A DNA stretch of 64,000 nucleotides from Octopus sinensis. Its lineage: Eukaryota. The stretch spans positions 186,001 through 250,000 of the forward strand of contig NW_021836000.1 in NCBI RefSeq assembly GCF_006345805.1. Reading direction: 5' to 3'. Under the pieces are notes generated by a model, which searched no databases, was not told the origin of the DNA, and saw nothing but the letters and a program-made list of their open reading frames with translations. A program made the translations under genes and the position numbers. Positions within the stretch are counted from its first letter, which is position 1. Each line of letters starts with the position of its first letter. Below are positions 31,900 to 32,870 of the stretch, one piece after another.

Positions 31900-32510
31900 T
31901 TACTTTTACGCAGGATTACGTGGCTATATTCGAGATGATGTATCTTTTGCTTAAAAGACCATATTAAAGGCTCATGCGTTTTATTACAGATCATGAGTTG
32001 GAATTTTGAAAATTTTTTCAAAGATTTCAAAAAAGAAACTACAAGATTTGATTATTCGGAATCAACGAACAGGTGATTTCTACATCTGCTAGTTTGTTTT
32101 TCCAATGTTACAACTCAACTATAACAAATTAACATTCCATCTATAAATTTACATGGTGGCTTGTTCACCTCTTTTGGACCAAGAAAAAGGACTTAAATAA
32201 AGATCTCACCATGGAAGAAGATTGCGGAGGACGCTATCACAACAAAAACTGGAGGCTGTTACTTAAAGTCGGCTTTGGTGACAAAAAATACCATTCAGTC
32301 AAAATTTGATGAAGTTTTTATGACCAATCTGGAAGGACAGATCGTTGAAGCAAGCGCTGCCAATATTCTCCTCAGTTATTGCGATCGCATCATTGTTCCT
32401 CCTCTTAAAGGATTCCAATATGGAATCACAATTCGGAGTTTACGTGAATTGCTCAAAGATGAGACAATTATTGTAGAAGTTCAGCCAATTGTAGAAGTTC
32501 AGCATAATTC
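31900..32510 (+). pseudogene. ilvE: Bacterial-type branched-chain aminotransferase (IlvE, PLP class IV) pseudogene
   Basis: GLRGY..KDHI.RLMR, IIRNQ..FYI..VF, EKGLK.KISPWKK, TKTGGCYLKSALV..FDEVFMTNLEGQIVEASAANI..VPPL..GITIRSL, colinear with E. coli-type IlvE. Frameshifts and stops present, no introns, C-terminus missing. Confidence 0.85.
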
Positions 32511-32870
32511 AATGTGTTCACCTATTGACTACGGAAACAGCTGCTTTAAATTTCCCATGTTGAGTCAGTAGAAGGACGTCTCATTTTAGAAAAACGAGGA
32601 CCTTTACGGATGCAATCCTCAATAAAGAAAACCCAAAATTAGAGAAATGAAGATATTATTCCAGCACTTTCAAAAGCAGCGGTTTTTGTTGGAGCATATG
32701 GGATATTTATCAATGTGCATCCCCAACCAAAACAATTTCGCTGCGATGCGCGGCAAACTCTTTCTTTGGATGAGTACGAAAATCTTTCCGAAAAAGTCAA
32801 AATCATTGCCAGTATAACAAAAAGACGGTATAGCGGAATTTTTTTACTTGAAATATAAAAGTTAAATAGT
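32510..32870 (+). pseudogene. DAHP synthase class I-beta / KDO8P synthase family C-terminal pseudogene fragment
   Basis: ILEKRG, AILNKENPK, then IIPALSKAAVFVGAYGIFINVHPQP..CDARQTLSLDEYENL; internal deletion and frameshifts. Confidence 0.7.

Follow-up and report, generated by a model that had tools for sequence, protein, structure and literature searches.

A probable fossil of Simkaniaceae-type chlamydial DNA in an animal genome

The stretch of DNA analysed here (the window, 64,000 nucleotides in length) contains, at positions 31903-32837, a segment that is very probably a non-functional fossil of DNA from a Simkaniaceae-type intracellular bacterium, preserved in the germline genome of an animal. 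The segment retains parts of two neighbouring genes of amino-acid biosynthesis. Further relics of this donor genome are scattered through the genome of the host, so that the segment marks a bygone chlamydial infection or symbiosis and is not a working gene. As intracellular bacteria of animals and protists, chlamydiae are both ancient and widespread, and we know of almost no documented chlamydial trace in animal nuclear genomes.

Results

Remnants of two adjacent bacterial genes

An earlier note on this DNA, made from its letters alone, had recognised motifs of a bacterial-type aminotransferase and of a DAHP synthase in this segment, and both were found where it had placed them, with matches to the Pfam families PF01063 and PF00793 that lie far beyond chance. 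When a read-through of the region was compared with 5.8 billion proteins, only seven matches were obtained, comprising five class IV aminotransferases and two versions (P0006/P0007) of one DAHP synthase. The best aminotransferase match (P0001) and the DAHP synthase are encoded on the same 53-kb contig of an environmental metagenome, JGI contig Ga0180434_10000586 (JGI 3300017991; hereafter L013), and another of the aminotransferases (P0003) bears the name 'aminotransferase class IV [Simkania sp.]'. The best matches are bacterial, and not the eukaryotic branched-chain aminotransferases (BCATs) that the note had weighed as the alternative. Among 185,579 species genomes a single match was obtained, to 'MAG: Simkania sp.' NZ_OZ244056.1 (Chlamydiota), which is the only named relative and is syntenic with the JGI contig.

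In L013 the aminotransferase gene (10001-10954) and the DAHP synthase gene (10920-11933) are both intact and overlap by 35 bp. They are followed in the operon by genes for chorismate mutase, prephenate dehydratase, DHQ synthase, EPSP synthase, shikimate kinase and chorismate synthase; prephenate dehydrogenase and DHQase/shikimate dehydrogenase are encoded divergently upstream, and SET-domain and ubiquitin-hydrolase-like genes are found on the contig as well. Two further relatives have the same succession of genes from the aminotransferase through DAHP synthase and chorismate mutase to prephenate dehydratase, and in a third the aminotransferase gene is followed by the start of a DAHP synthase gene at the point where its contig ends. 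The adjacency that the earlier reading had supposed is found, then, in L013 and in three relatives. The host remnant preserves the same order, with 81-86% nucleotide and 75-77% amino-acid identity to the JGI contig, and differs from the intact bacterial genes in being truncated and deleted. This degree of identity to two adjacent genes, together with the lesions described below, bears out the proposal that the fragment stems from one bacterial amino-acid operon that integrated and then decayed.

The name given to the first of these genes, E. coli-type ilvE, proved apt in part. The remnant shares the motifs of fold-type IV PLP aminotransferases with E. coli-type IlvE (TIGR01122 / PRK06606), and BCAT models remain the best for the intact donor protein P0001. 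The scores of this orthologue, however, fall just under both equivalog cut-offs (262 against 279 for PRK06606, and 233 against 245.55 for TIGR01122), and, unlike E. coli-type IlvE, it heads a shikimate/phenylalanine operon. Because the donor operon is aromatic (shikimate/Phe), the donor 'ilvE' is better named an IlvE-family transaminase of the aro operon, which is IlvE-like and not a certified equivalog; and because the gene stands at the head of such an operon and not of an ilv operon, the substrate of its product is probably aromatic. The enzyme may have served as the terminal Phe/Tyr transaminase of the operon. The intact DAHP synthase P0007 scores 469 bits on PRK08673 (cut-off 335) and 131 bits on the KDO8P synthase model (cut-off 314), and these profile scores class it as a genuine DAHP synthase of class I-beta, equipped with an N-terminal regulatory domain.

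In the complete Simkania genome NZ_OZ244056.1 (L029 6917-7189), the DAHP synthase gene that follows the aminotransferase gene is cut to a 90-codon ORF matching only donor residues 1-79. Since the next ORF (269 codons) resembles prephenate dehydratase by its length and order, the catalytic domain and the chorismate mutase seem to have been lost there.

Anatomy of the fragment

As delimited by blastn against L013, the bacterial DNA in the window occupies 935 bp (31903-32837) on the forward strand. The greater part of it, at 31903-32649 (+), is a pseudogene of the class IV (IlvE-family) aminotransferase, recognised by blastn and PF01063, that corresponds to donor codons ~34-296. It aligns by blastn to L013 10099-10887 with 80.5% identity when gaps are counted and 86.6% when they are not. 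A walk along the donor frame reveals eight frameshifting and four in-frame indels as well as four premature stops (at donor codons 57, 98, 119 and 255), six of the frameshifts and three of the stops falling in the N-terminal catalytic half, and over 239 comparable codons the remnant retains 75% amino-acid identity to P0001. The first 33 codons are missing, as are codons ~297-317.

The longest open stretch to survive in this remnant comprises 124 codons at 32197-32571 (+) and carries the motifs KISPWKK, TKTGGCY, EASAAN and PPL..GIT. Its translation matches PF01063 (Aminotran_4) with E=3e-11 and 43.9 bits (gathering cut-off 28.5) over profile positions 114-197 of 223, and its best NCBIfam matches are branched-chain aminotransferase models, with scores that lie below the IlvE equivalog cut-offs (46 against 279 for PRK06606, and 39 against 245.55 for TIGR01122). 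The lysine of the PLP motif is still present (TTKTGGCY), but a 6-bp deletion has removed two adjacent residues and no intact frame is left. When the 124-residue stretch was compared with 1.84 billion cluster representatives (HMMER), the best match was 45% identical and none exceeded 48%; judged by such comparisons, no other group appears to be closer to it than the Simkaniaceae proteins.

The passage from one gene into the other, which had been read as direct, is instead a deletion scar. At 32650 (+), the blastn alignment lacks 862 bp of the donor (L013 10888-11749), consisting of the tail of the aminotransferase gene and codons 1-276 of the DAHP synthase gene, and the same junction occurs in two of the copies described below (C4232 and C7755). 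The scar joins aminotransferase codon ~296 to DAHP synthase codon 277 at a microhomology of one or two bases, which accounts for the apparent fusion. Beyond it, 32651-32837 (+; blastn, PF00793) represents the last 61 codons of the class I-beta DAHP synthase gene (donor codons 277-337) with its stop and four further bases, aligning by blastn to L013 11750-11937 at 85.6% identity. This piece has 77% amino-acid identity to the donor and a single frameshift, caused by a 1-bp deletion; with codons 1-276 deleted, it lacks both the catalytic TIM-barrel core and the N-terminal regulatory domain. The region 32643-32858 consequently matches PF00793 (DAHP_synth_1) only at profile positions 212-265 of 270 (E=8e-7, 28.6 bits, cut-off 25.5), and its best NCBIfam model is PRK08673 (DAHP synthase), at 50 bits compared with 42 for KDO8P synthase. 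The KRG motif, formerly assigned to the DAHP synthase, belongs to the C-terminus of the aminotransferase (donor '...SEKRGPLC...'). Neither enzyme can be encoded by the host copy, and both genes are dead.

The fragment had also been described as less AT-rich than its flanks. The difference exists (36.5% GC in the insert against 30-32% in the flanks), but it is modest, as 10% of equal-sized stretches of the window reach 36.5%. No homology was found past either edge when the left flank was compared with the sequence upstream in the donor, and the right flank, with the pogo element removed, with the donor chorismate mutase gene; local alignment scores were no better than those of shuffles. A faint donor likeness at 31866-31903, on the left edge, falls inside a 276-bp host repeat and was treated as spurious. 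Elsewhere in the window, tblastn of 21 proteins from the donor-like contig matched only the same two genes, and blastx of the whole 64 kb against 7,769 ORFs (covering 2.40 of the 2.43 Mb of the Simkania MAG) matched only in the aminotransferase region.

Host copies, junctions and the order of events

The window sits in a 285-kb contig of a 2.72-Gb assembly (G000; 31% GC). Animal transposons and genes crowd this contig, among them pogo elements, an RFC5 gene and a PGM3-like gene, and there are several long unclassified ORFs besides. The assembly contains three more copies of the fragment, on contigs C4232 (99% identity), C7755 (94-96%) and C6580 (partial, 96%), with homology between the window and the other copies that spans 30615-32886 and 34629-42302. 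Stops, frameshifts and the deletion scar are common to the copies, C4232 and C7755 showing the scar and both junctions and C6580 the left junction, and the copies differ from one another by 1-5% and by one transposon insertion. Because the lesions and the scar are held in common, decay and deletion are older than the duplication. C7755 keeps four bases that were lost later in the lineage of the window.

The left edge of the bacterial DNA is abutted by an interspersed host repeat of ~276 bp (31631-31906), found by searching the genome with its own DNA, of which there are at least 30 genome copies with 71-87% identity, all ending at the base corresponding to window position 31906. Searches by blastn and tblastx against the Simkania MAG and Simkaniaceae contigs revealed no bacterial similarity in this repeat, nor did the same searches yield any match that would mark the flanks as unrecognised bacterial DNA. 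On the right, 49 bp of low-copy host sequence (32838-32886) separate the bacterial DNA from a pogo element and resume beyond it at 34629-34673; the pogo insertion aside, 94 bp of low-copy sequence precede further repeats. Collinear with its donor and with both junctions in host sequence, the fragment is in all likelihood, as judged by sequence comparison, a relic of bacterium-to-animal DNA transfer resembling a nuwt (a nuclear transfer from Wolbachia to its host).

The pogo/Tigger-type DNA transposon occupies 32887-34628 (+), where it is bounded by the terminal inverted repeats CAGTCCGACCCC..AAATGGGGCA and a TA target duplication, and it encodes DDE_1 and HTH_Tnp_Tc5 domains with one frame break. 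The earlier note set it directly at the right edge of the bacterial sequence; it starts 49 bp away, its site is empty in C4232 and C7755, and it is a later insertion that is unrelated to the transfer. As the element is absent from a copy that is 99% identical (C4232), its insertion is very recent and possibly heterozygous, and the pogo family may still be active. The order of events was accordingly insertion and deletion, then duplication of the block, and then insertion of pogo. A second pogo/Tigger-type transposon is present in the window at 37317-38366 (-).

When all six frames of the assembly were searched with PF01063 and PF00793, only these remnants came to light, and no intact aminotransferase or DAHP synthase gene was found. 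Comparison of the Simkania rRNA operon with the whole assembly gave one match of 90 bp at 77% identity and nothing else. No live or contaminating donor genome is co-assembled, and no bacterial contig with the same sequence was found in the assembly.

Other chlamydial relics in the genome

The host genome was searched with ~49 kb of one donor-like contig (JGI) in a census of further relics. The contig matches at least five further host locus families, and these relics are 78-92% identical, with the same AT bias and with internal deletions. They include pieces of the DHQ synthase and EPSP synthase genes on C8851, one piece on C9073, pieces of the NUDIX/DUF748 genes on seven contigs, and an aconitase/SET/UCH mosaic that is present in three copies on C9745 (3198-3860, 51112-51774 and 98546-98956). 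The mosaic is composed of three non-adjacent donor pieces (the ubiquitin-hydrolase gene, the aconitase/SET junction and the SET gene), and the ~47.9-kb spacing of its copies implies a large tandem duplication containing chlamydial DNA.

A ~470-bp donor piece is far more abundant, with at least 40 host copies at 75-87% identity (on contigs C12598, C12636, C8294, C8999, C12603 and no fewer than 30 more; loci L042-L061). The piece takes in the 5' portion of a gene whose product, a hypothetical protein of 155 aa, is 83% identical to an ORF of the Simkania MAG, and it runs on through the intergenic spacer into the beginning of the following gene. At a fixed distance of ~155 bp from it lies a host repeat, which the window contains at 26174-26337, and the piece looks like bacterial DNA amplified as the cargo of that repeat. 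Since the blastx scan showed no chlamydial piece in the rest of the window and the genome as a whole lacks the rRNA operon, the transfer affected several loci but was patchy, and not obviously genome-scale.

These relics bear on the explanation that competes best with direct transfer, namely that a host mobile element or repeat (by Helitron- or Pack-type capture, or as a composite repeat) brought the fragment to its present place, in which case the two-gene mosaic is possibly an artefact of capture. The ~470-bp piece and its accompanying repeat are consistent with such a route, as are the other relics that are also mosaics of non-adjacent donor pieces. Moreover, the 276-bp repeat and an element of the left flank recur 1-10 kb from different chlamydial fragments (C8598:184317-192816, C8966:25590-27739, C10066:1-5590 and C10118:38278-48444), where only ~0.02 cases are expected by a rough estimate of chance; an excess of this size could reflect carriage by a mobile element or the derivation of these loci from a single composite insertion. 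The fragment under study, by contrast, exists in only three or four copies, all in one duplicated block with shared flanks of at least 12 kb, a pattern that indicates segmental duplication or haplotigs and not transposition. In addition, the joined pieces keep the order and orientation that they have in the donor, which is what a simple deletion would leave, and no terminal structures of a carrier element were identified. We consider capture an unlikely origin for this fragment and favour transfer followed by deletion. The presence of the same host repeats near other chlamydial fragments nevertheless indicates that a mobile element may have relocated or multiplied some of these, and the site described here need not be that of the original integration.

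Kinship and mode of decay

At the nucleotide level, the host copies are 83-85% identical to L013 and 60-68% identical to four other Simkaniaceae, and L013 is itself 66-78% identical to those four. For the fragment of the window, the 80.5% and 85.6% identity of its two parts to L013 contrasts with 61-67% to other Simkaniaceae. In a maximum-likelihood tree the host copies and L013 are sisters (100% bootstrap), so that phylogeny, too, upholds the bacterial derivation proposed before. The stem of the host copies in this tree measures 0.18 substitutions per site and the L013 branch 0.0015. When the changes were polarised by parsimony with the other bacteria, 73 fell on the host branch and 6 on the L013 branch. 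Changes on the host branch run from GC to AT in 51 cases and from AT to GC in 6, and they are distributed over codon positions 1, 2 and 3 as 30, 29 and 14. The divergence, being mostly on the host branch, AT-biased and blind to codon position, represents neutral decay towards the 31% GC of the host, and not protein selection or bacterial evolution. On the evidence of this kinship, the donor appears to have been a Simkaniaceae-type chlamydia (phylum Chlamydiota).

The pattern of substitution also weighs on the idea that the remnant has been co-opted by the host, be it as a truncated protein made from the 124-codon stretch or in the form of a regulatory or non-coding RNA. The three full copies do each keep an open stretch, of 106-145 codons. 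It begins in mid-domain, however, with no start context identified, and its frame closes at different places among the copies; the N-terminal catalytic half is broken by the frameshifts and stops already described, and host-branch substitutions are at least as frequent at codon positions 1 and 2 as at position 3. Co-option is, on these grounds, very improbable. Fainter still is the prospect of an assembly artefact or contamination, in which reads from a co-sequenced Simkaniaceae bacterium were wrongly joined to host DNA: chlamydiae often turn up as cobionts when invertebrates are sequenced, but this explanation seems effectively refuted by four assembled copies that share junctions, stops, frameshifts and scar and yet differ by 1-5% and by a transposon insertion, by a divergence of 14-19% from the nearest bacterium that is AT-biased and codon-blind, and by an assembly with no intact aminotransferase, DAHP synthase or Simkaniaceae rRNA operon.

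Discussion

We propose the following history for the fragment. The donor segment took in the start of an aromatic amino-acid operon, in which a gene for an IlvE-family aminotransferase precedes one for a DAHP synthase of class I-beta. The contig most like the donor was obtained from an environmental metagenome; the donor itself may have lived inside this host lineage. DNA from lysed bacteria may then have been joined into a germline chromosome by non-homologous end joining, which is the accepted route of entry for Wolbachia transfers. The bacterial DNA is truncated at its left, at the edge that a host repeat now abuts, and after integration it changed without constraint, through AT-biased point mutation, many small indels and the 862-bp deletion that joined the two genes. 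Subsequent duplication of the surrounding block gave rise to copies that are 95-99% identical, and the last event was the insertion of pogo 49 bp downstream, in this copy only. A broader proposal, to which we give an even chance, is that a Simkaniaceae genome survives in the host as a scattered and in part amplified fossil record, whose pieces were spread to dozens of loci by host repeats or segmental duplication, and that the chlamydia was once in the germline or had regular access to it.

The fragment has much in common with the nuwts and other endosymbiont DNA fossils of arthropod and nematode genomes, in which DNA of an intracellular bacterium likewise resides inside animal chromosomes. 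Shared features are the conserved gene order of the donor, the stops, frameshifts and deletions, the invasion by host transposons and, in some cases, duplication. Most such transfers are described as neutrally evolving fossils, and a feature of this kind is well known from Wolbachia (PMC5541319), the chlamydial donor being what is unusual. The present case is set apart by a donor that is a Simkaniaceae-type chlamydia in place of Wolbachia or some other alphaproteobacterium, by a host that looks like a fast-evolving and non-arthropod-like metazoan, and by the lack of any co-assembled live donor.

Associations between Simkaniaceae and eukaryotic hosts have been described in which no comparable transfer is apparent. 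Xenoturbella bocki hosts Simkaniaceae, and its genome paper reports essentially no chlamydial transfer (PMC11521371); for Rhynchopus diplonemids with chlamydial symbionts, no such transfer is reported (bioRxiv 10.64898/2026.01.29.702485). The limited literature that we searched yielded no report of chlamydial fossils in an animal genome, which is not proof of their absence. So far as that literature shows, a fossil record of the kind proposed above would be the first 'chlamydial nuwt' in an animal.

The set of relics offers a datable and heritable record of a past association between host and chlamydia, in which the donor lineage is pinned to within ~2% of an environmental contig. It also constitutes a natural experiment in the decay of foreign DNA within a large and AT-rich genome, in which AT bias, deletion bias, transposon invasion and amplification can be followed. 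Because both genes are dead, the animal gains no shikimate pathway, and annotators should be warned that such fragments are neither contamination nor functional shikimate/BCAA genes.

Other features of the window

The window contains an RFC5 gene at 19383-20610 (+) whose introns measure only tens of bases, very short in view of the genome size of 2.7 Gb. The encoded protein has only ~50% identity to RFC5 from diverse metazoans, which points to a fast-evolving host lineage. A PGM3-like (phosphoacetylglucosamine mutase) gene at 35865-37048 (-), located in the same duplicated block as the bacterial fragment, is almost intronless, has a frame break near 36,800 and shows only ~42% identity to PGM3 sequences in the database; a retrocopy or pseudogene is a possible reading. 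At 7837-9192, long open frames of 278 and 160 codons overlap on the two strands, unlike the AT-rich surroundings. These frames have no Pfam match and are possibly part of a retroelement. Finally, a long and nearly perfect short-period tandem repeat at 23118-23460 generates open frames of ~100 codons in several frames on both strands, with runs of LGSG, NPDP, RV and TL.
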